A DNA stretch of 64,000 nt from the NCBI GenBank assembly GCA_002269645.1, contig NIVC01000561.1, forward strand, positions 186,001-250,000, given 5' to 3'. A program made the translations under genes and the position numbers. Under the pieces are notes generated by a model. It was not told the origin of the DNA. It saw nothing but the letters and a program-made list of their open reading frames with translations, and made no database searches. Below, in pieces: positions 21,166 to 60,468 of the stretch. Source of the stretch: Macrostomum lignano (Eukaryota). Within the stretch, counting starts at the first letter, position 1. Each line of letters opens with the position of its first letter.

Positions 21166-21259
<94 letters not shown>

Positions 21260-21344: not shown

Positions 21345-21422
<78 letters not shown>

Positions 21423-21472: not shown

Positions 21473-21555
21473 CTACGTCTACTGGTGTCCCAGAGACTGT
21501 CACCGCCCGGACAAGTGAAGATGCCGCTGACTCCGGAACCCCGGTGGCTTTTCAT

Positions 21556-21596: not shown

Positions 21597-21761
21597 CTTA
21601 AATCATCTTGACTTGTTTGTCCTTTTTACATGTACCGCGTCCGTGCCTGAGATTGGAGGCGCCCTCCTCTCTCTCTCTCTCTCCCTTTCTCTACGTCTAC
21701 TGGTGTCCCAGAGACTGTCACCGCCCGGACAAGTGAAGATGCCGCTGACTCCGGAACCCCG

Positions 21762-22390
21762 GTGGCCACCAGGAAGAGACCCCCATCTGGTTCTCCTGAT
21801 CCCGGTAGCCTCATGCAGCCGTCGAAGACTGCCAGAAGCTTACGGGAGAACAAAGTCATCTACCACCACGGAGCCAAGAAGCACTGGAAGCTGAGGTCAA
21901 AGCAGAAGCCCACCCTGGTGATCGCTGACCAGAACGTGGAATTCGTGAAGCTGGCCTCGCCAGACCTGGAGGTGCACTGCTTCCCAGGCCTCACGCTGGA
22001 CTACCTGAAGAACATCAGCAAGGTGGAGAATGCGAGTCCCGACACGGCCGCGTCATCGTCTGGGCCGGCAACAACGACCTCCACCGTGACAGCTTCGACT
22101 TCTCCATCGCCAAGCTCTGGAAGATGAGCCTGACCAACATCAGGAAGGCTTTCCCCGGTGCGTTAATCTGGGTGGTGCAGACCGTGTGCCCCCCCGATGC
22201 GCCGGCGCTCCAGAAGAGTAACTGTCGCAAGACGAACCAGCTCCTGAGCAGCTACCGGTCTGTCAGCCTGATCTCGCTGGACACCAAGGACCTGGCATTC
22301 CGACGGGACCAGATCAGCCTGGAGCGACAGTCTGCTGATGGGGCGTTCGCCGTCGCCCTGGAGACGGTGGGCGACCTTCCAAAAAACTGA
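21762..22390 (+). pseudogene. PLE ORF1, SGNH/GDSL-hydrolase-like, with one frameshift near 22050
   Basis: TLVIADQNV...EVHCFPGLT (block I/II-like); after a -1 shift, VIVWAGNND (block III GxND) ... RRDQISL (degenerate block V); stop at 22388-22390. Confidence 0.6.
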
Positions 22391-23880: not shown

Positions 23881-24316
23881 CCTGCCAACTAGGCCCCTTT
23901 TGACGCCTGTACAAAGGCTCTTTTACTGCTATTTTTCCCTCTGTGATTTTTTCATTGACTTTATTTTGATTTATTCAGATTATTTATTCTCTGCTTTTTA
24001 TTCATTTTTCTGACACTGTGTACGGTGCACCTGCATTTTTTGCTCTGAGCATTTAATAATAATTTTTATTTACCTTGTCTATTTATTTTGCCATTTATTT
24101 TTACAATTTTTATTCTACACTCAAAGGTCGTCTAGGCCCACTTGTACAGTTTTAGCCACCCCCCGCTTTTCTCATAGTCTCGGACTCGTTTTTATGTACT
24201 GACCATGCGTACTGTTTTAAGTGCTTGAGCACATCAATTTATCGATCGTCTCTCCCTGGCGATATCGCCTTTATATATTAATGGCAATTCGCGCCAAATA
24301 AACTTCACTCGCTTAC

Positions 24317-24427: not shown

Positions 24428-25889
<1,462 letters not shown>

Positions 25890-32400: not shown

Positions 32401-35400
32401 TCATCGATCAGTGCAACGTGTCTGTCTATACCAGAGCTAAACGGGCTAGAAAGTTCGTTGAATCCGGCTATTCTGTAGCTCTGCACGTTCTTCACCCAAC
32501 CCCGAGTATTATGAACGACTTTCAAAGCCGGCTGGTCACTGAGTTTGGACTGCGTGGCAGCGAGACTGCCAGGCTGCAGTTGCAGGCTAATTTCACCCTG
32601 CCGTCACCTCAAAGCGATCAGGTATGTGCTGCGAGATCTGAGCATCTTGTTTATAGTATCTCAGTGTGAGATCTGAGCATCTTGTTTATAGTATCTCAGT
32701 GTGAGATCTGAGCATCATGTTTATAGTATCTCAGTGTGAGATCTGAGCATCTTGTTTATAGTATCTCAGTGTGAGATCTGAGCATCTTGTTTATAGTATC
32801 TCAGTGTGAGATCTGAGCATCTTGTTTATAGTATCTCAGTGTGAGATCTGAGCAACTTGTTTATAGTATCTCAGTGTGAGATCTGAGCATCTTGTTTATA
32901 GTATCTCAGTGTGAGATCTGAGCATCATGTTTATAGTATCCCAGTGTGAGATCTGAGCATCTTGTTTATAGTATCTCAGTGTGAGATCTGAGCATCTTGT
33001 TTATAGTATCTCAGTGTGAGATCTGAGCATCATGTTTATAGTATCCCAGTGTGAGATCTGAGCATCTTGTTTATAGTATCTCAGTGTGAGATCTGAGCAT
33101 CTTGTTTATAGTATCCCAGTGTGAGATCTGAGCAACTTGTTTATAGTATCTCAGTGTGAGATCTGAGCATCATGTTTATAGTATCTCAGTGTGAGATCTG
33201 AGCATCTTGTTTATAGTATCCCAGTGTGAGATCTGAGCATCATGTTTATAGTATCTCAGTGTGAGATCTGAGCATCATGTTTATAGTATCTCAGTGTGAG
33301 ATCTGAGCATCATGTTTATAGTATCTCAGTGTGAGATCTGAGCATCATGTTTATAGTATCTCAGTGTGAGATCTGAGCAACTTGTTTATAGTATCTCAGT
33401 GTGAGATCTGAGCATCATGTTTATAGTATCCCAGTGTGAGATCTGAGCAACTTGTTTATAGTATCTCAGTGTGAGATCTGAGCATCATGTTTATAGTATC
33501 TCAGTGTGAGATCTGAGCATCTTGTTTATAGTATCTCAGTGTGAGATCTGAGCATCTTGTTTATAGTATCTCAGTGTGAGATCTGAGCAACTTGTTTATA
33601 GTATCTCAGTGTGAGATCTGAGCATCTTGTTTATAGTATCTCAGTGTGAGATCTGAGCAACTTGTTTATAGTATCTCAGTGTAAGATCTAAGCATCATGT
33701 TTATAGTATCTCAGTGTGAGATCTGAGCATCATGTTTATAGTATCTCAGTGTGAGATCTGAGCAACTTGTTTATAGTATCTCAGTGTGAGATCTGAGCAA
33801 CTTGTTTATAGTATCTCAGTGTGAGATCTGAGCATCTTGTTTATAGTATCTCAGTGTGAGATCTGAGCATCTTGTTTATAGTATCTCAGTGTGAGATCTA
33901 AGCATCATGTTTATAGTATCTCAGTGTGAGATCTGAGCATCATGTTTATAGTATCTCAGTGTGAGATCTGAGCATCATGTTTATAGTATCTCAGTGTGAG
34001 ATCTGAGCATCATGTTTATAGTATCTCAGTGTGAGCTCTGAGCATCATGTTTATAGTATCTCAGTGTGAGATCTGAGCATCATGTTTATCGTATCTCAGT
34101 TTGAGATCTGAGCATCATGTTTATAGTATCTCAGTGTGAGATCTGAGCATCATGTTTATAGTATCTTAGTGTGAGATCTGAGCATCATGTTTATAGTATC
34201 TCAGTGTGAGATCTGAGCAACCAGTTTATGATATCACGATCTAGTCTCTTCATATACTTTAGTGTGAAATCTAGTCACATTATATCCCAGGGGATCTCAT
34301 TTTTTTCTCAAAGTGAGATCTAGTCTCAATTTTAGGGTGAGATCTAGTCTCAATCTTAGGGTGAGATCTAGTCTCAATTTTAGAGTGAGATCTAGTCTCA
34401 ATTTTAGGGTGAGATCTAGTCTCAATTTTAGGGTGAGATCTAGTCTCAATTTTAGGGTGAGATCTAGTCTCAATTTTAGGGTGAGATCTAGTCTCAATTT
34501 TAGGGTGAGATCTAGTCTCTCATTATATCTCGGGGCGAGATCTAGTCTCATTATGTTTCAGGGTGAGATATAGTCTCATTATGTCTCAGGATGAGATCTG
34601 ATCTAATCTCTCATTAGAACCCAGGGTGAGATCTAGTCTCGTTATATCTCGGGGTGAGATATAGTCTCATTATGTCTCAGGGTGAGATATAGTCTCATTA
34701 TGTCTCAGGATGCGATCTGATCTAATCTCTCATTAGAACCCAGGGTGAGATTTAGTGTCTTACAGCATTCTCCATTCTACAAGCAGCCTACCCCCCCCCC
34801 CAACGCAGGGAGTGGACATCCAGTACGTTCGCAGCAGTCGCTCCCAGTTGCTCAACGGCGTCAAGAAACTCATTACCGAGGCCCGCCAAGCCGGCTACCC
34901 GGAGCATTCGCCCGACGAAATAGACGAGTACTTTCTTGAGCACTGCAACAAGCTGGGCATCTCCATCGCTAATCCGTTTGTGCCATCGCAGCGAAGGCTT
35001 GCCAGTCATGCTGAGGCTCTCTTTGCCAGGCTGGCGAGCGCTGCTGAGGCTCGAAGACTGCAGCAGCAGCAACAACAGAATCAAAAGCAGAGTCTGCAAC
35101 AAGCTACGCCCCCTACAGTTGCTATGGAACAGCCAGCTCAAGCGGCTGCATCGGCTCCGCCAGTGTCTCTGGGCAGTTTCTCGGTGTTTGACAAACTAGG
35201 CTTTGATACGTCTTTGTTGAAGAATGTTCTGCAGTCTGTTAGTGTTTCTAGCGCTTCAGCAGACAGTCCGGCTTTGCAGCAGCAACAGTCTCAACAGCAG
35301 CAGCAGCAACAGTCTCAGCAGCAGCAGCAGCAGCAACAGTCTCAGCAGCAGCAGCAATCAAGCTCCAGTCTGTCTCGTTTCTTACGCAATGCTACAGCTC

Positions 35401-36119: not shown

Positions 36120-36727
36120 TAGTATGTAGCGAATATGGTCAAAATTTCTTGCAGTTTATAATAAGCCGGTAGTGAAGCGTGGCTTCATCGATCTGTATGC
36201 ATGTTAATTGGTCCAGTTATAACCCAGTTGTCTCGGAACTGAATGCGTGATTAGTTAATAGCCAGATGCGGGCGTGAATCAATGTTTCACGTGATTGTTG
36301 TTGTTATGTTAGTTGAATTTCCACTTTTTACCCCGTGTCAGTTTTTTGCATTTTTTTTAATAAAAAGCAAAATGGTTAATATTGAAATAATTAATAGTGT
36401 GACCCTGCTTCGCTGCAATGCCCCGGTAATTAATTATTGTAGTATACAAGCACCCTTATTACGTAATATTCTGATTACGAAAAATGTGTGTTGAATAACA
36501 TGCTAGTTGTATAAATAATCTAGATCACTGAACATGATAAGTAAACGGTCTAATGAAGGAATGCCATGATAATTATAATTAGGGTTTTGTATGATCATGT
36601 TGTTTGATATTTTGTCTTTAAATATTTTTTATTTATTTTAGGTTTTCTAATATTTATTCTAGGTATTCTAATTTAAGTTTAGGATTCTGAACCAATCTTT
36701 GAAGTGAGACTCTGGTCTATTTTAAGG

Positions 36728-37300
36728 GTGAGATTCAGATGTAATCTAAGGATGACATTCTGATGTAATCTAGGGGTGACATTCTGATGTAATCTAGGGG
36801 TGAGATTCTGATGTAATCTAGGGGTGAGATTCTGATGTAATCTAGGGGTGAGATTCTGATGTAATCTAGGGGTGAGATTCTGATGTAATCTAGGGGTGAG
36901 ATTCTGATGTAATCTAGGGGTGAGATTCTGATGTAATCTAAGGGTGAGATTCTGATGTAATCTAGGGGTGACATCCTCATGTAATCTAGGGGTAACATTC
37001 TGATGTAATCTAGGGGTGACATTCTGATGTAATCTAGGGGTGACATTCTGATGTAATCTAGGGGTAACATTCTGATGTAATCTAGGGGTGACATTCTGAT
37101 GTAATCTAGGGGTGAGATTCTGATGTAATCTAGGGGTGACATTCTGATGTAATCTAGGGGTGAGATTCTGATGTAATCTAGGGGTGAGATTCTGGTGTAA
37201 TCTAGGGGTGACATTCTGATGTAATCTAGGGGTGACATTCTGATATAATCTAGGGGTGACATTCTGATGTAATCTAGGGGTTATTTAATGACATAATCTA
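36728..37300. repeat. 24-bp minisatellite x ~23 (gatgtaatctaggggtgagattct)
   Basis: Directly visible, between the two paralogs. Confidence 0.9.
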
Positions 37301-37583
37301 GGGTCCATATCTGATCTAATCTCAGGATGGGATTCTCATCTAATCTAAGGCAGAGATTCTGATTTTTTCCCAAGGGTGGATTCTCATCTAATCTTAGAAT
37401 GAGATTCTGATCTAATCTAAGGCTGAGCTCTGATCTAGCTTTGACTAGAATAGAGCTAGTTATTTAAAGCGTACTTACTGTACTTTATTGATTAAAGTAC
37501 ATTCGCACTTTTCCGCTGAACTTGCTTCTCCAGCGAATGCTAGCAGCCTATACCGGGCCCCAGCAGCCTGACCAAGAGTACTC

Positions 37584-40500
37584 ATGAGTGCATCCGCACC
37601 GAACAGTTGCAAAGCTGCGGCCGCGGCCGCTGCCGAGCAGCTCAAGGTAGATTTCTTAGAATTATTAAACTCTGAGTTCTCGAGCGACCAGCAGACAAAC
37701 ATATCGGCCAGTTCCGTTGAGTCTGTTGCCGATCAACTATTGGCTAAAATGCCTCGGAGTACGGACGCTTCGGTTGCTATGGCTACAGCCGATGCAGTTG
37801 CTAAGGCTTTAAAATCGGCTCTGCGTAATTGGCTGCGCGAATATTTGAGCAGCCAATTACCGGCTAGGAGCTGCATCACTGCCAGACTGCAGCATTTGAG
37901 CGCTTCTCTTCTAGCCCTGGCTGACCGGTTCGGATTCAGATTTGCTGATCGAGAATTGAACCGAGCCATCGCCTGTGCCGAGTATCAGGCTGTGGCTTAT
38001 CGATTGGGCGTTTCTGACACTGCCGCATTGTCAGCAATTCACGGCCTGGCTGACTATCTGCGAGCAGTTGGCGGTGCTGCCGCTAGCGAGCCGAGTGTTA
38101 AGTAAGTCGTTTTTGTTTGTTTGCTTTTATTGCCTAGATTAGACTAGCTTTTTAGTAAATCTAGTAGTTACTATGGTGAGAGTTCTCAGCACATTTACTA
38201 TCCAATAAGTCAGCGGGTTCTTTGAAACTTTGAAACTTCACAATAGCAATCCCACCCGCTCAAGATTTGTGTCTCTTTTCTTCTCTCCTCTCTTATCTCT
38301 CCCTCTCCTCTCTTATCTCTCCCTCGCCTCTCTTATCTCTCCCTCGCCTCTCTTATCTCTCCCTCGTCTCTCTTATCTCTCCCTCGCCTCTCTTATCTCT
38401 CCCTCGTCTCTCTTATCTCTCCCTCGCCTCTCTTATCTCTCCCTCGCCTCTCTTATCTCTCCCTCGCCTCTCTTATCTCTCCTCTCTTATCTCTCCCTCG
38501 CCTCTCTTATCTCTCCCTCGCCTCTCTTATCTCTCCCTCGCCTCTCTTATCTCTCCCTCGCCTCTCTTATCTCTCCCTCGCCTTTCTTATCTCTCCCTCG
38601 CCTCTCTTATCTCTCCCTCGCCTCTCTTATCTCTCCCTCTCCCCTCTCCTTTTGTCTCTCCTCTCTCCTTTTGTCTCTCCTCTCTCTCCTCTCTTATCTC
38701 TCCTCTCCTCTCTCCTACTCTTATATGTCCCTCTCATCTCCTCCCCTCTCTCTCCCCTCTCTCCTCTCTTCCCTCTCATCTTATCTCTCCTCGATCCCCT
38801 CTCATCTTATCTCTCCCATCATACCTCTCTTATTTCTCTTCTCTCCACTCTTTCTATTCCTCTTTTCTCCCTCCCTCCTTTCTCTCTGCCTCCTCTCTCT
38901 TCCTCTTCTCTTCCACCTATTTTCTCGTCTTACATTTAGCTTCTCTCCTCCCATCTCTCGCCTCTCCTCTCCCCTCGTCTCTCATATTCTATTCCCTCTC
39001 CTTTCCCCTCTCATCTGGCCCGTAGCCATCATCTGGCCCCTGAGGTAAAGAAAAGCTTGCTGACCGACCCCTGCCCTAGGTGCTTTGAAAATCAATTCAT
39101 AATTTCTATAATTAGAATTTCAATAATTCCCCATCTGGCAGGCTTATCAGATCTTCCGAGCTGGACGCTCAAGCTATCAAAGAGCAACAAGAGCATCTGT
39201 CGCAGCGGCGTACTAACAAGCGGCAGAAAAAGGAGCAAAAGCAACAGAAGGAGCAGCAGTTAAAAAAGCGCCAGCAGCAGCAGCAGCCCAGCAGAAGATC
39301 CAAAGACGGCAAACAGGTGGCCATAACTGACAGCGACTCGTGGACTGATTCGCTCAGCAGTTTGTCCTCTGACAGCGACGCCACTCCAGGTGCGAACGGT
39401 AGTAAGAAAAAACACAAGACTAAGAAGCAGCAAAAGACTGCTGAGGCTGACAATAGTCGCGAATTGTCGTCTAGAAAGAGACGCAAAGAGCCGGAAAAGC
39501 CGCCGTTGTTGCCTGTGAAAGTTGCCGAGGCTGCGCCAGTGGAAGACAGCAGTAAGCGAAGGAAACAGGATGAAGTGTTGGTTAAAGAAGAGCCAGCGGC
39601 AGCAGCGCCTGCGGGCAGCGTTAGACAGTCTTTGTTCAGCGCTCTGAGAAATGCGCCGTCGTCAGCGAGCAATTGCGATGGCGCTTCCAGCAGCGGCAGC
39701 GCCAGCAAAGCGGAGAGCTGCGCTAATGAGCCTGTTGTGGCCAAACAGGTCAAGGCGAGGCAGGAGCGCAAGCCATCCTCTTCGCCTGAACGGCCAAAGA
39801 GGCAGCAAGCAACTTTGGAGAAGCAACAAAGACCAGCTGTTGCTGTTGCTGCGGCGCAGAAGCAGCAAGCTGAAAGAAAACCGGAACAAAGACGGCCTCT
39901 TCCACAGCCGCCGCAGCAGCCACAGTCAAGTCGGCCGTCGATAGAGAAACCGCTACCACAACCGCCGCAGCAGCAGCAACAACAGTCGCAAAGACTTCAG
40001 GAGCAGTCTGCTCGGTCTTCGGAACAAAGACCGCCACTGCAGCAGCAGCAATCTAGTCGATCGTCGGAGCAAAGCCCTCTACAGCCGCAGCAGTCAGAAC
40101 AAAGACCTCAGGAGCAATCTGGTCGTTCCTTACAGCAAATAACTCCACCACAACCGCAGCAGAAGCAGCAGCAGGAGTCGCAAAAACCTCAAGACCAGTC
40201 AAGACCAGAACCGCAGCAGAAGCAATCGGAGCAACAAAGACCGCAACAAGAGTCAATGCTTAATTCCGCAAAGCCGGATCAGCAGCCTACTGCAGCGCCC
40301 ACCGTCCGCCTGGTCTGCCTGGGCAACGATCCATTCGTAACCCTTGACGCTAGCAAGTCCACGCTGAGTTCCAGCGGATTCGACAATAAATTTGTCAACC
40401 AAATGTGGGGCAGCGCCTACGGCTCGCACGGTATCGCCGAGGGCAAGGCCTACTTTGAGCTCACTAGAGTTGACAACGGTCAGGATCGGTCATTGTTCCG

Positions 40501-43474
40501 CATCGGTTGGACTTTGGCGCCAAAATCGAATCGCCAATTTTTGCCAGGCGGTGCTGCGTTCAGCTGGGCCTACTCGTCCACTGGCCGCGTGCTCGTTGAA
40601 GGCGACTGTCAGCCAGCGCCCGACGGTGTCGGCACTTGCGGACCGGGCGACTCAGTGAGCTTCTGGCCTGATGTTTCAATCATAGGGAGTTGCCTTGCAG
40701 TTGTAAAGAAACAGTTAAACAAATACTACAGATGGAACTGTGGATCCTAGTCTAGGCTAAAGTTAAGATAAAGATCCTGAGAGTATTTGGTTGTAACTCT
40801 GGACTAGACAGCCAACTACCTTTACTCGAAAGTCCCGTAAACCGTTTTAACTTAACACGACACTGGATTAAAACTACTAATAGTAGTTGTGCACCGCGTG
40901 TTCACCTGAGTGCCTGCCTCTACATGGGCACAGGTGTACAGTGTGCATTAGAGGCACAATAGGTGAACAAAATGTGCACATTAGGTGCAACTTAGGCGTA
41001 GAAGCAATGCAAGGGGCGTGTTCCCACTCTCTAAAGTTCTTTGTATCCTTCTTTGAAAGTCATTGGAACTTATCAGTATAGGAAAAGTTATGCACCTGCG
41101 TAGGCATAAAAGGTGAGCAAGGTGCACAAAAGAGGCACTACAGTGGCCTAGTTCGTGCGTGTTTTGGAAATTTGGAAACCTATTTACGCCGTACATTTAT
41201 ACCTTACGCACATCTAATTCATGTGACTAAAACATCAAGCTACGTGTTAATCTCAGATTCTAAATTGTTGTCAACCCACTTCCCTCCCCTACTCCGCAGG
41301 TAGCCGTATCCATAGAAATCAGCCGAGTCGGCTCGGACTCCGCCCAGGCGCAATTCTCTCTGGCCGTCATACCGCGCCATCTCGATCGCGGCGAGCGTCG
41401 CTGCCAGCAGACTTTCACTCTTTGCTACAACCTGCAGCCGGACACCGAGGAGTGGGCCAACGCCTGGTTCCCTCACGTGGCCATTCTGAACGCCAGCGTC
41501 GAGGTCAATCTTGGCCGAGTGTCGCCGCTGTCTAGCAGGCAGCCAGGCTACCGGCTGCTGTCCCATCGGCCGAGAAGTGCGCTGTGCAGTTTGGCCGATG
41601 CTGACCCCGCGTTTGGCTCCTTGCCAGCCGCGGCCGCTGCCACAGACAGACCGGATGTTCTGTTCTGCGTCGGTTTGCCATTTACTGGCAAAACTGAATT
41701 TGTAGAGACTTATCGGAAGCAGATTGGCCTGGCTAAGTCTGTGTGTTTGAGCATCGACGCATTGGCCGACGCCTGTCTGGTGCCGGAGCTGGGCGACAGC
41801 ATGGATAAGTCCGACACTAGAGAGAGAATTGGTCGCTACCTGCTCAACAATTGCTCAGAGATCCTGTTCGCCTTAGCCACTTTCGCCATGCAGCACAGGC
41901 TGGATGTGATCATGGACATGTGCAACGCCTCTCCATTCACCAGGCGCCTCCGGCTTAACCTATTTCGACCGGCTGGCTACGCCTCCAAAGCTATTATCTT
42001 CTGTCCCGGCCCGAAAACTGAAGCCGGCTTCCGGCAGAAATCCTTGGCTAGATTAGGCCTCAAGGAGCCTTGCGGAGCTTATTATCAGCTGGCTGCTAAT
42101 TTAGTTTATCCTCGGCTGTATCAGGCTAGCCAAGCCGCTTCCGCCTCAGCTGCGGCGTCTGCTACATCTAGCGACTTGTTTGACGATGTCCGGTCCTACT
42201 GCGACATTCCCCAGTCGATGCTGAACGATCGCCAGACTGACATCAATGCCGAAGCCGCGTCTAGAGGTTTCACTCCGCAGCCGGAGGAGGAACTGGACGA
42301 GGTGCTGCTTGAAGTGTGCCAGAAATTCGGATTAGATTACGTGGCCGAGTCTTGCGCCGATGAAGCTGTTCAACCAAGTGTAGAGACTGCGCCTGACCCA
42401 GCTAAGAAACCAGCGCCAGAGCACAGCCCAGCCACAGATTCTCGGCGCTCCAGTCAGGACCGACGCGACTGCGCGCCTCATCTGCCCCAGCCTACTCAGC
42501 AACACCAGCATCGGCCTCATCTCGAGCACAGACTCGAAGCATCCGCCTTGTCCCACGATCGCCACCGCGACCCGGCCAGATCCAGGCGATCCTTGGATGG
42601 CGACCGGGAGCGTAGTCGAGAATCGAATCGGTCGCATCATTCGCAGCATTCTTCTTATCGATCGCATCACTCCCGATCGAGATCCCGATCGCGCGACATT
42701 GCTCATCATCTTCAGCATCATCAGCGTCCACCGCCACCACCGCCAGTGCGTCCGCATCCTCCTCTGCCGTCTGCGTCGCATCGAGATCGTCGATTCGAAT
42801 CGTCGTCGTCAAGCTCAGCTAGCGGTTACCATGGCAACGATCGATGGAGAAGCAGCAGTCGCGGAGACGGTGCTACAATCGATAGGAAACCGCTGCCCAC
42901 TGTTATCGGCAACAGTATTAGCAGCGGCAGTAGGAGTAGCCATGGTACATCTTTCAATCATAGAAGCTTGTCAAGAACAGCCGAGGTTCGCGATCGAGAT
43001 TTTGATCGTCGACGCCAGTCGTCATCCTCGGCTGCTGCAGACCGGTCAGAGCCGTCTCTGGATCATTTCTATTCGCAGGCACATCTGGGCAGCAGGATAC
43101 CTCAAGTTGCTCCGTACGGGCATGACAGGAGCAGTAGCAGCATCAACAGCAACAGTGGCGGCCTTAGCTCTCTGCGGCCATATCAGCATCGAAATAATCC
43201 GGCATTCTTCTCGTCCTCAGCGTCGCCAAGGCAACCGCCGCCGCCGCCGCAGCAGCCAGCAATCGGAGCCATCGGTGCCATGTCGGCAGCTAACAAGCGG
43301 ACGGGCCAGTCTCTATGGGAGAAGCTGCATCCGCCCCCGGTTGCTTCCGGCTACGCCGCTGCCAGTCAGCCGCAGCGGCAGCCCGAGCTCGAGACCGCAG
43401 CCAGCTACCACGCTCGATCGCTTTTACCTTCGCCGTCTGCTCCAGCAGCTGCTGCTAATCGAGAAAACTTCTGA
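37584..43474 (+). CDS. hnRNP U/SAF-A-family protein, paralog 2 (unknown helical N-terminus, K/Q-rich linker, SPRY, P-loop, RS/H-rich C-terminus), ~1401 aa
   Basis: Phase-consistent model join(37584..38101,39142..40654,41300..43474) = 4206 nt. SPRY (MWGSAYGSHGIAEGKAYFEL...FRIGWTL...FSWAYSSTG...WFPHVAILNASVEVNLG); Walker A GLPFTGKT; VIMDMCN; ANLVYP. Confidence 0.83.
38215..39078 (-). mobile_element. hAT-like MITE family copy (CT-rich interior with a 20-bp tandem unit) in intron 1 of paralog 2
   Basis: The ends are reverse complements of the family termini (ttgaaacttcacaatagcaatc...; atctggcccctgagg...ccgacccctg). Confidence 0.6.
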
Positions 43475-44310
43475 AATATTGACAGAGATGACGCTGAAAG
43501 GCGAAAATTTAATCTTCAAAACTATAACTATTTCAGTACCCATGTGGACTGGACTAAATCATTTTTAGTTCGCATTTATATGAACTTTCGTGTCTCTTTG
43601 CTAAAAAATCCAGTCTGTAAGCTGACTGATTCGAAACTGTATTTACATTTGCTCCTGTCAGCAGTCTGTAGTGATTATTATTTTTGTACAAGCTCACTGC
43701 TGCCAGTTTTGCTGAGACTGTTTGTCTTGTGTAGTTATATAATCAAACACAACTATTAATCCTAATAAATATAGTGGTTCAAGACTGCCAGCTTGTGATT
43801 ATCCGTCATCCTGTTGTTTAATTTGGAACAGCTATGGTCTGTTGAAATCTCAGTTGAGAGTTGAAGTGTTCTGTCTGTTTTTTGTTCAGTTTTTTGGGTT
43901 ATTAAACTCGTAAAATCCAAAATAATTGCGTCAGGTGCCAACAACAACCCTCCTGAGAAATATCAAGCGCTGGACGTGTTGCTCTCCGCAACCGCAACTC
44001 AGTCCGTCACTGATCGTCCATATTTTTGTGCTTTTTTGTGCATGAAGACTACAACGCGTAGTGAGAACTTCGTTTCTTGTCTTCTCCCTAGCTAGGCTCG
44101 CACTCGCGTTTTTCGCTGGTAAATTAAACGTAGATACAAAAATTGACTGCTTAGAAAGAACTGATAAAGAAAGGCCTAAAAACTCGAACATGTAGTTTTT
44201 TCTGACTGCACTGGCCTGATTACTTCTGCTGGTACAACAAGGTACAATAAAGATTAGGGCTTTATTTTTAATCCAAGCCTGAAGCAGCAAGAGGCCGCAA
44301 AAGACGAGAC

Positions 44311-47300
44311 ATGGCGTGTAGAAGTCTGCACACGGCATCATCGAGTTCGCAGTTGGAGACTGTGGCTGATTTAATCAGAGCCGGGGCAGATCTTGACGAG
44401 CAGACGCCCGACGGCAGTTTCACACCCCTGCACTTGGCCGTGTATCACGGCAACGACAAAGTAGTTGCTACCCTGATCCGAGCCGGCTGCAATGTTGACT
44501 TGCCAGACACTGCCGGATTTACCCCGGTGCACACAGCCGTTCTGAAAGGTCGCACCGCTATTCTCCGACAGCTGGTCAAGGCCGGAGCCAATCTAAACAC
44601 GCACTGCTGCATGGGCAACACTCCGCTGCTCGCGGCCATCTCTCAGCGAAGAATCGCCGCGTTCAAGGCGCTGCTCGAAGCGCAAGTCGACGTTAATCAG
44701 TGCTGTTCTGATGTGTCAGCATCGGCGTCGCCTCTTTTCGCTGCAACTCTCGGTGGAGACCAAGAATTTGTAAAGCGCCTGGTAGAAGCTGGCGCGTCCA
44801 TCAATTTCCAGCAGCCAAACAACGGACTGACAGCTTTGCACGCCGCTGCTTTAACTGGCAATGCGAAACTCGTCAACTATCTGGTGGGCGTAGGCGCAGA
44901 AGCTGGGCTGGCGAACTTTCAAGGCATCACGGCCGCTAATATGGCCGACATGCGGGGCGATCACCGGGTTGCTGCCCGGCTTAACCTTGCCGACACAGAG
45001 CCAACGGTCTCAGACTCGGACCCGGCTGATCATGCTGAAGAACCCACAACCGAATCACTTCCTGGTGACAAAGGACTCGAAGAACTTCGTGAATTCAGCG
45101 TCACATTGTCCAATGCAATGTGCGCGGCCGGCTTCAAAGCCTTGAACGCCAGTTTGCAAAGCGGTGCTGCATTAGTCTTGCAAGACATCCTTCGAAGGTA
45201 CTATGGTACTGAAGATCTGTACGTGTTTGGAAGCTTCTCAGACGGATGGGGCAGCTGCTTGAGGACCTTGAATGGCAGAATCAGCCGTGACTCCGACATT
45301 GACGTCACTGTGTTTCAGCCCGAAGCTCCACTCTGTTTGCGTGCCATGGATTCTGCTTTTTTCGCCGACTGCAACAACTGCAGGCACCTGGAAGTCGAAT
45401 ACGTTGACGGGCACGCTCGCTATGGAATCGATGGTAGGAATTAATTACTAGTACATGTAGCTCAAAGGTTTACCGATAATTTTTTAGCAAACTTGTATCT
45501 TATATCTGACGACGTACATTATTTCGCTTTTTAGCCTCGGGTCCCAATGCAGCTCTGCTCGCAAACTACCCGCTGATTACTGCAATAGACTTAATCAAGG
45601 CTTTAAGATGCTGCCGCTATCCCCGCATCGAGCTGTTGCAGCCCGACTACAGAAACCGGAAGTGTCAGACAACTGAGATGCCTCAGCGCATTCTGCAGCA
45701 ACTCAGAGACGAGGCTCTCGGCGACTCTCCAAAGTGCCACGCGGTCGTTGCGGCACCTCCAGACGAGCCTCCCGGCAGCTGCATGCGGGTGAGCACAACC
45801 CTGCTGGAGAGAGCCGTCATGCACAGCCTCACCACGGTGCAGGGCCAGTTCTTCATCCTTCTAAAGTTCCTCATCAAGAAGGTGATCAGCAGTCGAGTGA
45901 GCGGTCTGAAGACGTACATGGCCAAGAACCTGCTGTTCTACATGCTCGACGAAACACCGGCAGCGGACTGGGAGCCGCAGAACTTGCTGGAACTCGTGCG
46001 GCAGTCTCTGCAGCTGCTGGTTGAGATGATGGAGAGCTCAGACTCCGAGCATGTTTGCATGAAGCACTTCTTCCTGCGCGATGCCAATGTGTACTTTAAG
46101 AAAGATCACGACTTGCAGAGTGTCATTATTGACTGTGTGCAAGCAACAAGCCGAAAACTGTTGGTAGTGACGAAAGACTTTAAAGACTCGTTGCGAGACA
46201 ACACGTCCAACGTGATTCAGTTCCACCCGTTTTACTACGCAGCTCAGCTCATCCGGAGCGTTGGCACTACACATTCGGGTTACTTTTCAATCTTACCTTT
46301 GGTGAAGGACTGCATCGTGAGACTAGGAAGCGGCTTCACAGAATCCACAAAGGAGCAACAGTTGGAAGATTTGCTTCATCAAATAAACAAACTTCCTGAA
46401 CCGTCGGCAAAAACAACAAAAGAATGCTTGAAATTTTTGGCCTATTTAAAATTCGGAGTACCTTTGAACAGTAGCAACGTTAGTTTGGCGAGCTCAGCCA
46501 GTCCCGGGATCCCCTGCGCCATTGGATGCCGAAGCCAAGACGTCGACGAACGAAAACTGACCGCAGAGTCGGCCAAGCAGATGGTGTGGAGCCATCTCAG
46601 CAGCAACGACTCAGCCTGGAAGTTCGGCCTCTTGCTCAGACGTGACATTCGTCTGGACTTTCTGCCGTCCGACCTGACGGATCTTATCACCAAGAAAACT
46701 GGAGGCGTTAGCGTCGATGCATCCTACTACTTTTTAGACTTCTCGGCTCTTTGCGAGGCACTTAAAGCGCTTTACCTGGACTCGCTAGGTGTCCCAGCTG
46801 CCTGTGCTCCGCTGATGCGCAGCGGCATGTCCGATTTCTATGAGGTTGACCTGCTGCCCCAGGATCAAGGCACCGCTGCAGCTGGCGGTGTTGCCCCGGC
46901 TCCGCTTCCGGATTTGTCTGTGCAGTTTGGAGCTCTGAAGATGGTGCGTCTTTGGCAGCAGCTGAGCTGAGCTTAGTTGACATAATTAAAAGATTAGCTA
47001 ACTTTAGGACTTTTGACTTTAGATAAGAGAGGAGAGGAGTGGGAAGAGAAGGGAAGATGAGGGGACAAAAGAGAGAATAATGAAGAGGAGAATGGAGAGA
47101 GGAAGGGGAGAGAGGAGAGAGGCGAGATGAGAGATGAGAGGTTAGATGAGGGGAGAGAGGAGAGAAGGGATAGGCGACCCCGGAGGAGCAAAGATAGGCG
47201 ACTTGAGAAGAGACTCAAGCGGGCCAGATTGCTATTAATTGTGAAGTTTCATGGATCCGAGGGCCGGATAGAGAGGGCTTCGCGGGACGCATGTTTGCCG

Positions 47301-47762
47301 ACCCCTGAAGTAGACTATGCGACTCCGCACTGTCGGGTATTAAGTTAGGCACTAAAACAGATCATCATATTCACTATCTAATCTAACAAATAAAAAGCTT
47401 TTCTCACGCGGCAGGGACTTATTTTCCGTTCTTATGCAATTTTTACAGCCAGACAGCTGGGCACTGACCGACGACAACGAAGACTTGCGTCACTACATCC
47501 GGGATGTTCAAGGAATTTTGACTGACGCGTTCGCGGCCAACCCGAGCGCGCTTTGCCAGTTCGCTGAGGCTGCGCAGCAGGTGGTGAGAAGAACCGAAGT
47601 AAATGCACTTTTAAGTAAAGAATTTGTAAGTACAAAATGTCCCTAAATTGTTTACCATTCCAGCCAGAAATTGTAGAATTTGTGCAGAGAGGATTTTTAC
47701 CGGCCGACTCAACAACAAGCGCTGATGTTGCTGACCAGCTTGAAGAGGATGACTTGGATTAA
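44311..47762 (+). CDS. ankyrin-repeat + Mab-21/cGAS-like nucleotidyltransferase (cGLR family), ~935 aa
   Basis: Phase-consistent model join(44311..45433,45535..46943,47449..47625,47664..47762) = 2808 nt; AATAAA near 47906. About 6-7 ankyrin repeats (TPLHLA, TPVHTA, TPLLAA, SPLFAA, TALHAA); NTase FGSFSDG...DSDIDV; third Asp in IDLIKALRCCRYP; Mab-21 helical motifs MRVSTTLLE, FILLKFL, KTYMAKNLLF, MKHFFLRDANV. Without the last two introns the frame would end at 46970. Confidence 0.85.
46990..47307 (+). mobile_element. hAT-like MITE family copy inside intron 2 of the cGLR gene
   Basis: GA-rich interior plus the family 3' end ending in ttgccgacccctg; the 5' end is degenerate. Confidence 0.55.
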
Positions 47763-49292
47763 ATTTCACGGCGATCTGAACGTTGATAAATTTTTGTTGG
47801 TGGCCAAAGTTTTATATTTGACAGACTTTTGATTAACCGCACATAATGACAATTAAAATCAATTTAGTTAGACTTTGATTTAACAATATTGTTTTTATTT
47901 TTAACAATAAATAAACTGTGAAACACATTCGAGCTTATATTGAATAGCTTGTGCACGTTTTGACAAGTTTCCGTTGAAAAGTACATTGCTGACTTTGCCG
48001 GCTTTTAAAAATGCTACTATAGATTTAAAAAAACATATTTTGTTAATAACATACTTAAGTAATGACAAAAAATCACAAATATCGCCCTAATTGGATTAGG
48101 ATCAAAGTTTCTTGACACACTGGTCTTGACACACTGGGGCCTCTAGTGATAATTAATAATTAAATTATAATAATTAATATTATAATTTTTACCGCATACG
48201 AATGAGCAAGGCGTAACGATATGAGCGATGGAAAATTGATAACAAAATATCGCGCATCCATTTGAAGCATATGAAAGGAGCTCTTTTTATTGGATTTTTT
48301 ATTATTTCTGTCTAGAAGTGTTCCGACACTTTCCCTAGTTTGTTTCTTTTGTTTCAGAATGCAGCTTATAAAATCATTTAAAAGTTGTAAAGAAAAACTG
48401 TATTATTTAAAATAGCGTTATCACAGAGACGAGAGTAGATGATTGTGCTTTAATCCCGATCAGCGACATGATTTATTGTAAAAAAGGGGTCAGATTCTTT
48501 CAAACAGTTTCGTAGAAACCCAGACTTCTGATTTTATGGCAGTTCTAATCTTCATTTTTGACAATACAATTATGCTCTGTTGGCTCCAAACGAACGCAGA
48601 AGTCGTTTAAAACGAAAAAGATAAATTGCACTAAATACATTTCAAGAATTGACAGAAATGAAATTGGCCATGTTTTGCGTAATATGAGCCGATTATAAAT
48701 ATTTATAACAATAACAATAAGTTGCACTACTGCATGCATGCTACTAGTTGGCTAATAAATTTTTCCTCAGTAGTATGTAACGTACGATGAGAGGCACAAT
48801 GATATCGACAGAGCGACAAAGTCCGTGACACCTTTAAAGTAAAAGTAATCGTATTTGCTGTAGGCACAATTTGCTGGGCTTATTTGTTTAGCCAAAATTT
48901 AGCTTTAAAATTTGTCTCTAGTTCAAACTAGTTGCCTTCGCAGAAGTTAATAAGTAGACTGATTAAATTGCTTTAAAGTACAAATATATGCATTTACAAT
49001 AGCCAAGCTTATTGTACTTACGACTCTTCCCATCTGATCCCATGTACCTTTTACGCTGGACTCAGTGGTGGCGCTGGATTGGCGCTAAAATCTAGACTGC
49101 GGCGCTAAAATCTAGACTCACCTATATGAGTACATACTGTATAATTTCTTTCGATTTTTAGAACTTTTATCCTTCATTTTTCGAACTATGCAGTGACTGC
49201 ACTTTTCGTTCACAGGCATCACCAGCAGATTGTCACACCTATTAACTCTTGTTTATCATACATGCTTGACATACAGTTTACCATGTAGTCTT

Positions 49293-51534
49293 TCAGCTGC
49301 TCAGTTTTGGCGATCGATCATTCCTGTTGACCGACCGGCCCTCTTTAATTGATCGGTCGCTGCCAATCCGATTGCGCACCACCATGTAGGTTGGCAGCTG
49401 GATTGTCCGGGTCACCGGGTTCACCTCAAACACCGGCTCGTTTGTCCAAATCTGTTGCTGTATTAATTTTGTGATTTGAGAAGTGTTTGAGTCATTTTTG
49501 GATACGTGGCGGTGAGTTGTCGACAATATAACTAGTGTGCGACTGACTGGACTGAGTGGTTTTATGATCGAATCAAATCGATTCTTTTGGAGATCCCAGG
49601 GTCTAAAAATAGCATATACCACAGCTTTAATGAATCCTTGTGTCTAAAAATAGCACATGCAAAGCTTTCAGAAATCCCTGCGTCTAAAAATAGCATATAC
49701 CACAACTTTAGAAAAACTCTGTGTCTAAAAATAGCAAATGCCACAGCTTTAGGGAATCCCTGTGTCTAAAAATAGCATATACCGCAGCTTTAGGGAATGC
49801 CTTATCTAAATATAGCAAACGCCACGATTTTACCGTAGTACCGGGTCTAAGAACAGTACATCCCATAAGTTTTGTAGGAATGAATCCCAGAATCTAACTA
49901 AACAGCAAACTGATATCCTTGAGTCAAAGAATACTCTACACAAAAAATTAACTCGTTCAGAGCCTCGCGCTTACTTCGGAATTCTCCGGTCGCCATTTGA
50001 GCACAGCCTCATCCTCGCCAAATCTTCTCAAGCAGGACACAATGCAGCCGCTGGGCGAGTCCAGTCTGCTCAAAGGGTTAAAAGGGGAAAGCTTGCAAAA
50101 AAGAATTTGTTAACTTTCGATTGCACTTTAGCATGTAGGGACGTCCAAGGTTAACCTCCCAGATCCTTAGTTGCTGGGCCAGTCTCCCAGATCCTCAGTT
50201 GCTGGGCCAGCCTCCCAGAGAGTCAGTTGCTGGGCCAGCCTCCCAGAGAGTCAGTTGCTGGGCCAGCCTCCTAGATCCTCAGTTGCTGGGCCAGCCTCCC
50301 AGAGAGTCAGTTGCTGGGCCAGCCTCCCAAATCCTCAGTTGCTGGGCCAGCCTCCCAGATCCTCAGTTGCTGGGCCAGCCTCCCAAATCCTCAGTTGCTG
50401 GGCCAGCCTCTCAGATCCTGAGTTGCTGGGCCAGCCTCCTAAATCCTCAGTTGCTGATCAGCCAGCCACCCAGATCCCTTGTTGCTGGGCCGCCACCGCC
50501 TTCCCAGCAGCTCACCTAGCAGGTATCAGGCACACTATCGCAGACTCGGCCACCTTGTTCCTGACAACCAGCTCCAGATCGCGGCTGTAGGCCACCCGAA
50601 TCCCTCCCTGATCTGCGGAACTCCTTTCTTCCTCGTTTTTATCTTCCTCCTCAGCAACAGTTTCCAAGGAAGCAACTGTCGGCGTTGACGGCGGGGTCCT
50701 GGCCGCTGCCCGCCCGCCAGTGTCGAACACTTCGCTGTCCGTCTCCGAGCCGCTGCTGCTGCCGCCAGCCTCCTCATCAGGCTCGAATCCGTCCTCGCCA
50801 TCGTTCAAGTTTCTCACATCGAACACGATCAGATCCCCGGAGCCGGTGCCCACCCACAGCTGCCTTCGGCCGCTCCTCCGCCGCGTCCCCGTAGCCAGCA
50901 GCGAAGTCACCCTGAAGGGATTCGCCGAGCCGGCCTGGCCGGTGCTCTCCGCAGCGTCGGCATCGAACTCGCTGAGCCGCTGCAGCGGGCGGGTCATGGT
51001 TTGGATGTCGAACCTCAGCCGGCAACTGGAGCCGTCGGAGCTCCACAGCTCTACAACTGGGGAGCCGCGGACCGCCAACCAGACACCGCCGGAGCGACCG
51101 CCGTCATGCAGACAAAGCACCGAGTCGAACGGGCACTCGGACACTCGGACACGACAATACGCGTCCAGACTGTCCGATCGTAGCAACTGGACGAAGTTGC
51201 CGCAGGCCACCCACAGGACGCCGCTGCCATTCTCGGGCAGCTGAGCCAGCGCAACTGCAGTGGCCGGGCAGGCGCCGCCGAGGTTGATGAAGAACACGGA
51301 GGAGTCTGGCTGTTCTCGTCCGATGTCCTCCAGCACGGCCAGGGAGCCGCTGGCCAGGGCTGCGAACACTCGATGACGCCGGGGGCCGCCGATCGGAGCT
51401 GTGGACGGCTGCGCCTCCGAGCAGATGGCCAGGACTGAGTCCGGCATCCGGAACTCCCACAGCTGCTCGCTGGGGGATTGATTCGTAAATTAATAAATCA
51501 ATCAATCATTCAATCAATCAATAGATCAATCAGC

Positions 51535-57900: not shown

Positions 57901-60468
57901 AGTCAAAGCTCAAAAGTCGCATAGACCCATTGATCACCATACATGCACGAGCAATCTCTTACAACTAAATAAAACCGCCTCATCTCTTAGGCCTCCAAGT
58001 ACTTTTAGGAATCTACAGCAGAAACTGTTGCTAAGTCGGTTTTACTGGAAAATCTGGTTGAAAAAATACAGCAGACTTCGAAGGCTTGTCTCTAAGCATG
58101 AGAATGCACTCACGATTCGGACTTGAACCTCGGCGGCCCGGCGCGAGTGACGTTAAATCTGAGGGCTCTGAAAGATTGGCGTTGTGTCGGGAAATCGTGA
58201 CTTCTTTAGCTGGGAAAGGTATTATTAAGACTAGCTTCTTTTTGACAGCAAAGGATTAAATTACTGTGCCAGTCTGGCAAGGTCAACAACAGAAGCATGA
58301 ACTCAACAGAAATAGATTGGATAGCATCGAATATCTATGATAGAATTGAGGTTAAATGTTTAGTCATTCCAAAAGTGCAGTCTCGATCGAGCATGCCAAC
58401 TGTTGTGCAGTGTGAAATTGTTGCTCAAGTGGTTAGGAAAGTGGGAAACATGCTCGAGATTATGGGAACAAAGACTACAATGTATACATCTAGTGCAAAA
58501 TGTGTTATTTAATTATCGAATTGTTTTACCCGTTATCTTTTTGAGCATTCTCCAGCTGCTCAAGTCTATGGGATGGTTAAAGAAGCAGGTTTGCTATTAA
58601 GGAACTCAGCAGAATTACAGAACAATGTTTACTTATATAATGCTAAATGCATTCGCGAGACAGGGAGTCTTCAGTTTTCAACGTCTTATTTTAGCAAACA
58701 TTCAAGATATCTTACATTCTTGAATTCACAAGTTAAAAAAGCTGAAACTGTACTTTTGGAGAGCAGCGATGCTCACAACACAGTTGTTGTGAGCCCGTAT
58801 GCTCACAATACGGGCTGGTAATTGTGCTTTTCTAAACAGATTTTGCAAAGGTTTTATTTTTCGGCAAAATGTTCAATGGATTTGGCCCCGGACTCTCTTA
58901 AGTAGTCCATGATCTGGCCATAGACAAATTTGGTTGAAAATCTGGATTCGAAAGGATTGTCTAGGAAAAGTACAGAACACACGACAAAGTTTATCACCGT
59001 TCTGCGAGTTTAGTGTTTGTTAAACTTTAGTTGTCCATAGTTTAAATAGTGTATCAATTGAGTATTTCCTCCTCACCTGCTCAGTTTCAAGTCCAGTTCG
59101 GCGCGATCAGGGTGTCACGCTTTCTCAAAACCTCTTCAACGCGGAATTCTGCTTTTGCAGGTCCTCCATTTCATGTCTGATATCGCTGTCGCTAAAAGTA
59201 CAAACAGTGAATTATACTTAAATATTTAAAGTGCATAAATGCTGTGTACTTTCTACCACATTCCCATACCGATATCTCTGCCTCATAGCTCACCGTCTCA
59301 AAACTCTCTGCCCCGAAGCCACCCACCCAAAACTCTCTGCCCCGAAGCCACCCACCCCAAAACTCTCTGCCCCGAAGCCACCCACCCAAAACTCTCTGCC
59401 CCGAAGCCACCCACCCAAAAACTCTCTTCCCCGAAGCCACCCACCCCAAAACTCTCTGCCCCGAAGCCACCCACCCAAAACTCTCTTCCCCGAAGCCACC
59501 CACCCCAAAACTCTCTGCCCCGAAGCCACCCACCCAAAACTCTCTGCCCCGAAGCCACCCACCCCAAAACTCTCTGCCCGGGCCACCCACAGTCCCAAAA
59601 CTCTCTGCCCCGAAGCCACCCACCCAAAAACTCTCTGCCCCGGGGCCACCCACAGTCCCAAAACTCTCTGCCCCGAAACCACCCACCCCAAAACTCTCTG
59701 CCCGAGGCCACCACAGTCCCAAAAACTCTCTGCCCCGGGGCCACCACACAGTCCAAAACTCTCTGCCCCAAAGCCACCCACAGTCCCAAAACTCTCTGCC
59801 CGAGCAGCCACCCACCCCAAAACTCTCTGCCCGAAGCCACCCACCCAAAACTCTCTTGCCTCGGGGCCACCCACAGTCCCAAAACTCTCTGCCCCGAAGC
59901 ACCCACCCCAAAACTCTCTGCCCGGGGCCACCCACAGTCCCAAAACTCTCTGCCCCGAAGCCACCCACCAAAACTCTCTGCCCCGAAGCCACCCACCCAA
60001 AACTCTCTGCCCCGGGGCCACCCACAGTCCCAAAACTCTCTGCCCCAAAGCCACCCACCCCAACAGACTCACCCAGCGTCGCTTTTCTTAACGCGCGAAA
60101 CCAGAAGCGGACGCTCCACCAGAGCTGCTGGGCTCAGAACGGCAGCTGCTACCCGACCGGTCTCTGGACTCCTGCGCGCTGTCTCGCCCTGAAGTCGTGA
60201 AGCACGCCTGCAGCTGAGGACTGAGCCACCAGCACCTGCTGCGGTGGAGAACGCTGTAACGTTTCGTTGGTTTTGTTTGTTGCTGCTGCTGACGCGACTT
60301 GCTGGGCGATTCTTCAAGCAAACTGTCGTAGTTGAAGTCGGTGCCAATCTCCGAGCCCTGGTCGGAATGCTGCGGCGACGCCTTGGTGAGGCTGACTGAG
60401 AAACTTTTGCGACATTGACAGGCCGAAACGATTGCTAAGTGAATCGCTGAGCTTGCGAGTCACGTTGC
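49293..60468 (-). CDS. TBC1D2: TBC1D2/2B-like Rab GTPase-activating protein (coiled coil + TBC) with a C-terminal beta-propeller-like region; 5' end lost in the gap
   Basis: Exons (minus): ~60468-60073 (contains indels), 59191-59077, 57676-57518, 56837-56634, 55916-55730, 55659-55417, 54934-54245, 52753-52601, 52516-52416, 51469-50516, 50065-49975, 49451-49293; all GT-AG. Motifs: LQNNNRFVNSEV, DSYGF, LKSLIRGGIP..YRSAVW, QISLDLMRT (R finger), GYCQGMN (Q finger), FETLLRLWDCFLLEGPKVLFRFAL. Orthology is inferred from motif order. Confidence 0.85.
49585..49850. repeat. ~41-bp minisatellite (gtctaaaaatagcatataccacagcttt...)
   Basis: About 6 degenerate copies are visible. Confidence 0.8.
50165..50490. 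repeat. 28-bp minisatellite (gttgctgggccagcctcccagatcctca)
   Basis: Directly visible, next to the donor at 50515. Confidence 0.9.
51480..52180. repeat. (TCAA)n microsatellite
   Basis: Directly visible. Confidence 0.95.
52775..53380. repeat. GTGAGATT-core minisatellite
   Basis: Repeating gtgagatttgagggtaagattggataga variants. Confidence 0.9.
53800..54230. repeat. degenerate ~50-bp minisatellite (cagtgtacattcaaggtc...)
   Basis: Visible copies. Confidence 0.75.
55030..55390. repeat. ~37-bp minisatellite (ctagctagtgtacattcaagccgctcaatcccttacc)
   Basis: Visible copies. Confidence 0.85.
56930..57420. repeat. ~48-bp minisatellite (attgtacattctctttggccactccctttaatctggcgttccttcgtca)
   Basis: Visible copies. 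Confidence 0.85.
59290..60062. repeat. ~30-bp C-rich minisatellite (aaaactctctgccccgaagccacccaccc)
   Basis: Directly visible; explains the PEATHPK pseudo-ORFs. Confidence 0.95.

Follow-up and report, generated by a model that had tools for sequence, protein, structure and literature searches.

cGAS-like receptors (cGLRs) have been defined by an active-site motif, by homology over two lobes and by the similarity of AlphaFold models (Li et al. 2023, PMC9980059). In the same survey, 87% of the cGLRs were stand-alone proteins and some were fused to ankyrin or TPR modules, the ankyrins being proposed to mediate protein–protein or protein–ligand contacts; 'most platyhelminthes' are described there as having no cGLRs. 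The subject of the present analysis is one such fusion, encoded by a four-exon gene on the + strand of a 64,000-nucleotide stretch of DNA from the flatworm Macrostomum lignano (positions 186,001 to 250,000 of contig NIVC01000561.1, assembly GCA_002269645.1; hereafter the window, whose own numbering is used unless stated otherwise). Judged from its sequence and its predicted structure, the 921-residue product, PAA80893.1, has a somewhat better than even chance of being a ligand-gated ankyrin-cGLR, one of a large M. lignano family, that makes a nucleotide second messenger.

Ankyrin-cGLRs of this species had already been catalogued. Table S2 of Li et al. 2023 records Ank_2 in six M. lignano cGLRs (PAA86972.1, PAA45980.1, PAA68676.1, PAA67649.1, PAA58690.1 and PAA68216.1), and Table S3 shows that five M. 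lignano enzymes were cloned for a screen of 140 enzymes with double-stranded DNA (dsDNA) and double-stranded RNA (dsRNA), the ligands being ISD45 dsDNA and poly(I:C). Among these five entries is PAA57558.1, the nearest relative of PAA80893.1 that consists of the nucleotidyltransferase (NTase) only, and three of the five carry an ankyrin arm, which is trimmed in the listed constructs, as these begin at the NTase core. The accessions of the PAA80893.1 gene were not found in the portions of these tables that were searched, and the name Mlig016540 gave no match in the literature. PAA80893.1 is an uncharacterised member of a published architecture, and the novelty that an earlier note on this DNA had suggested for it was overstated, since ankyrin-cGLRs, several of them from M. 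lignano, are listed in Table S2 and paralogs have been cloned. Being one of many paralogs with a catalogued architecture, the gene has its value as a test case for non-nucleic-acid activation of cGLRs, not as a discovery. To our knowledge, dsDNA and dsRNA are the only known activators of cGLRs, and most animal cGLRs are orphans. Whether cGLRs sense proteins or other non-nucleic-acid ligands is a question raised by Li et al. 2023, and a search for such a ligand could reasonably start from an acidic cGLR that carries its own protein-interaction arm. M. lignano is tractable, with working RNA interference and transgenesis, and the gene could reveal whether a cGLR pathway persists in a flatworm and which receptor it uses.

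With the catalogued M. lignano ankyrin-cGLRs and with PAA57558.1, PAA80893.1 shares a GSF[SA][DE]GWG ... SD[IV]D ... D block with 20 residues between GS and DxD (GS-x20-DxD). A Mab-21_C lobe and the tail motifs LPDCAR.. and DSAWKF are likewise shared with M. lignano paralogs, and N-terminal Ank_2 arrays with the ankyrin-cGLRs among them; what sets PAA80893.1 apart from the catalogued paralogs is a core that is 30-63% identical to theirs and a short arm of seven repeats. Cv-cGLR1 (8gjw) and Sp-cGLR1 (8gjy) share with it the two-lobe cage, the catalytic triad and the lack of a zinc thumb, but at 14-18% sequence identity and a moderate template-modelling (TM) score of about 0.5; Sp-cGLR1 is a dsRNA-responsive enzyme and sensors of nucleic acid are basic, whereas PAA80893.1 is acidic and adds ankyrins and a 315-residue tail. 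Vertebrate cGAS has in common with it the Mab-21 fold, the G-S, [DE]x[DE] and D residues, the R-x-S-x-S..E strand and the lysine of S-Y-H-V-K, while PAA80893.1 lacks the zinc thumb and the basic N-terminal tail, is acidic and carries an 8-residue insertion between GS and DxD. MAB21L1 and MiD51, which are not known to be catalytic, share the fold and the top Foldseek ranks. Of the five catalytic residues of cGAS, Mab-21-like proteins keep only one (Wu et al. 2014), whereas the PAA80893.1 family differs from MAB21L1/2 in keeping all five, invariant among the paralogs. The cnidarian ankyrin-cGLRs (Li et al. 2023, Fig. 4C) combine a cGLR core with ankyrins as here, a likeness of architecture.

Fold and homology of the nucleotidyltransferase core

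The core was modelled by AlphaFold over residues 256-605, using 11 family sequences as the alignment, and the model is confident, with a predicted local distance difference test (pLDDT) of 85.7 and a predicted TM score (pTM) of 0.89. A Foldseek comparison with the PDB returned Cv-cGLR1 of oyster as the best match (8gjw, E=1.2e-7), followed by MAB21L1, cGAS, Sp-cGLR1 and MiD51, all with probability 1.0 and TM scores of 0.5-0.55. A single-sequence phmmer search of the PDB reached cGAS at E ~0.7 only; the family profile, run against PDB sequences, reached cGAS at E=2e-5 and also Sp-cGLR1. An exhaustive search with the family profile reached proteins containing both PF03281 and PF20266, and an hhalign comparison with 23 such proteins extended through both lobes (305 columns), with a probability of 99.95% and E=1.3e-38.

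The helical lobe is also recognised directly by Pfam, where PF20266 reaches 27.5 bits (cut-off, 24.1) and matches 11 of 11 family members. The N-terminal lobe gives only sub-threshold Pfam matches, to generic Pol-beta-type families, and is recognised only by its predicted fold and by profile–profile comparison. Homology over both lobes, one element of the definition of Li et al. 2023, is found here through hhalign together with Mab-21_C, and the AlphaFold model shows the structural homology to known cGLR/CD-NTase enzymes that is another. No PADLOC family, CBASS cyclases included (CBASS, cyclic-oligonucleotide-based anti-phage signalling system), matched at E<=1, Pfam gave no SMODS match, and OAS1_C (PF10421) was found neither at E<=1 in PAA80893.1 nor at E<=10 in 11 members.

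Active site

The cGLR motif of Li et al. 2023 (PMC9980059) reads h[QT]GS - X8-20 - [DE]h[DE]h - X50-90 - h[DE]h. PAA80893.1 carries this motif as V-F-G307-S308, x20, D329-I-D331-V, x59, I-D393-L, and the paralog PAA57558.1, with an identical VFGS, was accepted as a cGLR in the survey, so the motif is present as the authors applied it. The features of the core are as follows.

45229-45234, + strand: G307-S308, NTase motif (VFGSFSDGWG); S invariant and G nearly invariant in paralogs
45295-45303, + strand: D329-I-D331, metal-binding DxD; invariant, within DSDIDV at residues 327-332
45588-45590, + strand: D393, third catalytic Asp (AIDLIKA, 391-397); invariant, in exon 2
45786-45809, + strand: R459-V-S461-T-T-L-L-E466, counterpart of cGAS W-R-L-S-F-S-x-x-E; R, S and E invariant
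45876-46139, + strand: Mab-21_C helical lobe, residues 489-576 (Pfam PF20266)

The FGSFSDGWG segment occupies residues 306-314 and is encoded in exon 1. In the core model, the GS lies at the junction of strand 1 and a helix, the DxD lies at or just before the start of strand 75-80, and D393 is placed on strand 137-145, giving a canonical layout overall. The hhalign alignment sets the FGS-x-x-[DE]-G, SD-x-D and D-x-[IV]-x-A blocks in register with Mab-21 proteins, and further pairs M-R-V-S-T-T-L-L-E-R with W-R-[IL]-S-F-S-x-x-E-[KR], K-T-Y-x-A-K with S-Y-H-x-K-T, and C-M-K-H-F-F with C-P-N-Y-F-I. The strand from R459 to E466 is labelled here as putatively triphosphate-binding, and K505 is the counterpart of the lysine in cGAS S-Y-H-V-K by the profile alignment to cGAS.

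All 40 columns that are invariant among 10 other M. lignano paralogs are kept in PAA80893.1 (40/40), including S308, D329, D331, D393, R459, S461, E466 and K505, which argues for a gene under the usual constraint of its family. The catalytic positions are invariant or nearly so though the paralogs are otherwise 30-60% identical. All residue classes needed for metal-dependent nucleotidyl transfer are conserved (GS, DxD and D; R-x-S..E; K505).

The earlier note had read the locus as a Mab-21/cGLR-superfamily NTase with the full G-S / D-x-D / D set, and this is borne out by fold, profiles and conservation. Its Mab-21 helical bundle corresponds to the PF20266 match above the cut-off at 489-576, its placing of the triad on either side of intron 1 agrees with GS and DxD in exon 1 and D393 in exon 2, and the fold comparison with cGAS and cGLRs that it had proposed returned Cv-cGLR1 first and then MAB21L1 and cGAS. 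The Pfam comparison that it had also proposed succeeded for Ank and for Mab-21_C and failed for PF03281.

A set of further conserved residues was seen in the core: H368, C400, C401, C442 and H443, forming Gly-His, Cys-Cys and Cys-His pairs that vary little or not at all within the family (C400 at 45609-45611). By hhalign, C400 and C442 align with conserved Cys of distant Mab-21 relatives. These five residues may contribute to a metal site of another kind or to a structural contact.

Ankyrin arm, linker, tail and charge

The regions flanking the core are these.

44320-45006, + strand: seven ankyrin repeats, residues 4-232, from Pfam and repeat-unit parsing
45007-45096, + strand: acidic linker, residues 233-262, with an isoelectric point (pI) of 4.05 and 10 D/E in 30 residues
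46227-47759, + strand: C-terminal extension, residues 606-921, encoded in exons 2-4, acidic (pI 4.6) and predicted helical

Pfam matches to the arm span residues 37-230 and comprise Ank_2 (E=5.7e-37), Ank (E=1.3e-28, in 5 stretches), Ank_4 and Ank_3, and tandem repeats of 33 residues are found in PAA80893.1. Both the roughly 6-7 N-terminal ankyrin repeats and the acidic linker had been called from the letters alone; seven repeats are readable and significant in Pfam, and the linker is as acidic as was said. The extra C-terminal sequence had been called at ~250 residues. It is present, but its length was underestimated, as ~315 residues lie beyond the Mab-21 fold. No Pfam match was obtained for this extension, and its AlphaFold model is mostly helical and of low confidence (pLDDT 47, pTM 0.28), except for the helical hairpin at 'LPEPSAKTTKECLKFLAYLKFG', which is confident. 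Some paralogs share the tail motifs LPDCAR.. and DSAWKF.

The vertebrate zinc thumb, H-x5-CC-x6-C, has no motif match in PAA80893.1, and the profile alignment shows the thumb as a segment inserted in cGAS and absent from this M. lignano family, in keeping with the thumbless enzyme described in the earlier note. PAA80893.1 has no basic N-terminal tail, and its pI is 5.94 for the core and 5.13 for the whole protein, below the value of 8.5 that marks a basic protein. The cGLRs that sense dsDNA or dsRNA have a pI above 8.5, and acidic cGLRs have been proposed to respond to non-nucleic-acid ligands (Li et al. 2023, PMC9980059); among cGLRs with an identified ligand, most sense dsRNA or dsDNA (PMC9980059). 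The acidic core of PAA80893.1, a property read from its sequence, is weakly consistent with a non-nucleic-acid input.

Gene model

On contig NIVC01000561.1 the gene occupies positions 230311-233762. Its spliced translation of 921 residues is 100% identical to PAA80893.1 (BOX15_Mlig016540g3), which GenBank titles 'hypothetical protein BOX15_Mlig016540g3', Macrostomum lignano, and all exon junctions have GT/AG borders.

44311-45433, + strand: exon 1, from the ATG at 44311; a single open frame of 377 codons, ending in phase 1 at donor GTAGGA
45434-45534, + strand: intron 1, 101 bp, GT..AG
45535-46943, + strand: exon 2, with the remaining NTase core, the Mab-21_C lobe and the bulk of the C-terminal extension
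46944-47448, + strand: intron 2, 505 bp, GTGCGT..CAG, containing a purine-rich low-complexity stretch
47449-47583, + strand: exon 3, whose donor GTGAGA at 47584 yields the annotated 921-residue product
47664-47762, + strand: exon 4, with stop TAA at 47760-47762 and an acidic tail ..DQLEEDDLD
47906-47911, + strand: candidate polyadenylation signal AATAAA, 144 nt 3' of the stop

Exon 1 encodes the ankyrins and the acidic linker as well as the first half of the NTase lobe, with GS and DxD, and an in-frame stop lies 13 codons 5' of the ATG at 44311. Because this one exon holds the ankyrins together with GS and DxD, the ankyrin–enzyme fusion does not depend on any splice. Paralog alignments run unbroken across the junction of exons 1 and 2, and the position of intron 1 is kept in paralogs P0001 and P0006, as checked at their own genomic loci. 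The peptide of exons 3-4 showed no significant similarity to paralogs, having only the acidic C-terminal tail in common with them; this ..DQLEEDDLD tail resembles the C-termini of the nearest paralogs. Transcripts support the four-exon mRNA, since the GenBank annotation of M. lignano was built on a genome-guided transcriptome obtained by RNA-seq (Wudarski et al. 2017, PMC5730564). The four-exon gene of the earlier note thus proved exact, its translation being identical to PAA80893.1, and its union of ankyrins and NTase in one protein is upheld by the single reading frame of exon 1 and by the RNA-seq-guided coding sequence.

Two variants of the model were considered and dropped. A two-exon model ending at a TGA at 46970 (852 residues) was abandoned since the transcript-based coding sequence splices at 46943, and exon-3 donors at 47580 or 47625 gave way to the 47583 border of the annotated coding sequence. 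A near-identical copy, PAA90457.1 (925 residues), differs at 3 of 921 aligned residues and is located on a different contig, as expected, because the DV1 genome is duplicated (PMC5730564).

Proposed function and alternative explanations

In PAA80893.1 the acidic linker tethers the seven-repeat ankyrin arm to a Mab-21/cGAS-type cage, which is followed by the family-specific helical tail. In the mechanism that we favour, the resting protein would be inactive, and engagement of a ligand would lead it to make a nucleotide second messenger, most probably a cyclic dinucleotide, by joining two nucleoside triphosphates. A downstream receptor would read this messenger, presumably STING if the species has one. 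The acidity of the core would make dsDNA or dsRNA a less likely activating ligand than a protein or some other non-nucleic-acid molecule, and the ankyrin arm would be the most plausible site of protein recognition, localisation or autoinhibition. A broader proposal is a long shot: that Macrostomum has built up a large family of acidic cGLRs, arrayed partly in tandem, whose input device is the ankyrin arm and not a nucleic-acid groove, acting through recognition of a host or pathogen protein or through release of autoinhibition, and whose nucleotide product is read by a receptor distinct from canonical STING.

Several points weigh against the ligand-gated cGLR. Pfam PF03281, the Mab-21 NTase model, matches neither PAA80893.1 nor its ten paralogs. 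A Phe precedes GS where the published motif has Q or T, and the spacer from GS to DxD, brought to 20 residues by the 8-residue insertion in the hhalign alignment, is as long as that motif allows; the insertion could alter the activation loop. The role of the ankyrin arm is one that we purely infer. The main text of Li et al. 2023 does not mention M. lignano when it describes the 15 active enzymes (PMC9980059). The downstream receptor is a further difficulty, for cGAS and STING have been reported lost in flatworms, on the basis of Schistosoma (Wu et al. 2014). M. lignano is not among the species in the count table for cGLRs and STING of Li et al. 2023. When the ligand-binding domain of human STING was used in a word-indexed search, the only STINGs among 216 candidates were from deuterostomes, none from protostomes; this search, which has no power for flatworms, showed no STING in M. 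lignano. Textbook accounts likewise hold that flatworms lost cGAS-STING. Within the window, the earlier remark that no STING-like gene is visible holds for the ten large frames scanned with Pfam, none of which matched STING.

Four other explanations are rated lower than the ligand-gated cGLR. The protein might be an active NTase of a different chemistry, producing OAS-like linear 2'-5'/3'-5' oligonucleotides or adding nucleotides to RNA or protein. The FGS..G......SDIDV pattern resembles that of non-canonical poly(A) polymerases, the N-terminal lobe has weak matches to MTPAP-like_central (E=0.032), Polbeta and NTP_transf_2, two paralogs match NTP_transf_2 at 5.8e-5, and UniProt fragments are named 'NTP_transf_2 domain-containing'. 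However, the best structural and profile matches are all to Mab-21, cGAS or cGLR proteins, no poly(A) polymerase or OAS is among the 50 Foldseek matches listed, and the C-terminal lobe is of the Mab-21_C kind, not PAP-associated or OAS1_C, which makes such a chemistry unlikely.

No likelier is a non-catalytic Mab-21-type scaffold or nucleotide-binding adaptor, in the manner of MAB21L1 or MiD51, whose ankyrins would recruit partners. These two proteins are indeed among the top structural matches, and the main text on the published screen reports no M. lignano paralog as active (PMC9980059). However, where Mab-21-like proteins retain a single one of the five cGAS residues (Wu et al. 2014), the present family keeps the five and also the counterparts of W-R-L-S-F-S-x-x-E and S-Y-H-V-K, all invariant in paralogs that are 30-60% identical, and such invariance is hard to explain without catalysis.

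Decidedly unlikely is a conventional nucleic-acid sensor in which the ankyrins would serve only for localisation or downstream contacts. It would fit the fact that most cGLRs of identified ligand sense dsRNA or dsDNA and that the top structural match, Cv-cGLR1, is an active invertebrate cGLR. Against it stand the pI values of 5.94 and 5.13, where sensors exceed 8.5, and the missing zinc thumb and basic N-terminal tail; moreover, ISD45 dsDNA and poly(I:C) were the ligands in the screen of the M. lignano constructs, which go unmentioned among the active enzymes in the main text.

That the locus is the 3' part of a larger SPRY/AAA_33–ankyrin–Mab-21 protein is very improbable: UniProt models (A0A1I8H1V8, A0A1I8HSC9, A0A1I8HA38) do join 43435 to 44293 in frame, with A0A1I8H1V8 (P0025) aligning to 37608-43435 and then from 44293, but a stop at 43472-43474 closes the upstream frame, the acceptor needed for the join lacks a pyrimidine tract, the RNA-seq-based GenBank annotation gives two genes of 1398 and 921 residues, and the paralogs begin with ankyrins or the NTase core and have no SPRY/AAA_33.

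Paralogs in the Macrostomum lignano genome

The family profile gathers 75 representative clusters at E<=1e-30, and all named matches are from M. lignano. Apart from the near-identical copy, the closest other M. lignano proteins found by homology search are 51-53% identical to PAA80893.1 or less. Many members have N-terminal ankyrin arrays, some far longer than that of PAA80893.1, while others begin at the NTase core. Three ankyrin-cGLR paralogs stand in tandem within 24 kb on the same contig, roughly 120 kb from the PAA80893.1 gene (NIVC01000561.1, 349372-373241; at about 1388-4047, 10001-13870 and 18497-23252 within that segment), with 73-80% mutual identity and a spacing of ~8.5 kb. Within the 64-kb window itself, neither a second copy of the gene nor extra upstream ankyrin exons were found, tblastn included.

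Two family members, P0019 (1346 residues) and P0021 (997 residues), contain two cGLR cores with ankyrin repeats between them. Either these are genuine proteins with tandem domains, as OAS2/3 are, or gene prediction has merged neighbouring tandem genes.

Genomic neighbourhood

The upstream neighbour at 37608-43474 (+) encodes a product of ~1400 residues (1398) that GenBank names SPRY domain-containing (BOX15_Mlig023272) and that includes an AAA_33 segment at 41477-43474 (Pfam E=8.9e-9). A more distant paralog of this SPRY/AAA_33 gene was seen at about 30727-32669 (+). Between the upstream neighbour and the ankyrin-cGLR gene lies one further feature.

44290-44291, + strand: AG acceptor, 20 nt 5' of the ATG, at which the merged UniProt models splice

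Polycistronic units are common in M. lignano (PMC5730564). The AG at 44290/44291 may, we infer, be a spliced-leader trans-splice site, and the SPRY/AAA_33 gene and the ankyrin-cGLR gene may form one polycistronic, trans-spliced transcription unit.

The neighbours in the window appear unrelated to immunity: the SPRY/AAA_33 gene, TAF4, a Ty3/gypsy element and a beta-propeller frame. A single long frame at 5738-7564 (-) is a TAF4 homologue (Pfam TAF4 E=8e-41, TAFH E=8e-11). The remnant at 15367-18244 (-) is of Ty3/gypsy type and consists of a 734-residue frame with RNase H, an integrase zinc finger, an integrase core and an integrase C-terminal domain, with a further frame upstream. Two overlapping long frames at 22338-24013 (+) have no Pfam match; the second bears a by-eye, unverified resemblance to a GIY-YIG nuclease (YVGETANSIRGRMLAHI), as in Penelope-like elements. 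Downstream of the cGLR gene, a frame at 50512-51447 (-) matches an LRRK2-type beta-propeller / WD40_2 domain (E=6e-11) and is probably one exon of a larger gene on the opposite strand.

Satellites and microsatellites are abundant, at 3893-4647, 24429-25885, 29297-29897, 32633-34219, 36704-37434, 59299-60063, 61626-62170 and elsewhere. Their units include a 35-bp repeat in 45 copies, a 62-bp repeat in 12 copies and a (CT)n tract of 1.4 kb, and a 30-bp unit recurs at 59.3-60.1 kb and 61.6-62.2 kb, where both of its orientations are seen. A window so packed with satellites fits the repeat-rich genome of M. lignano.

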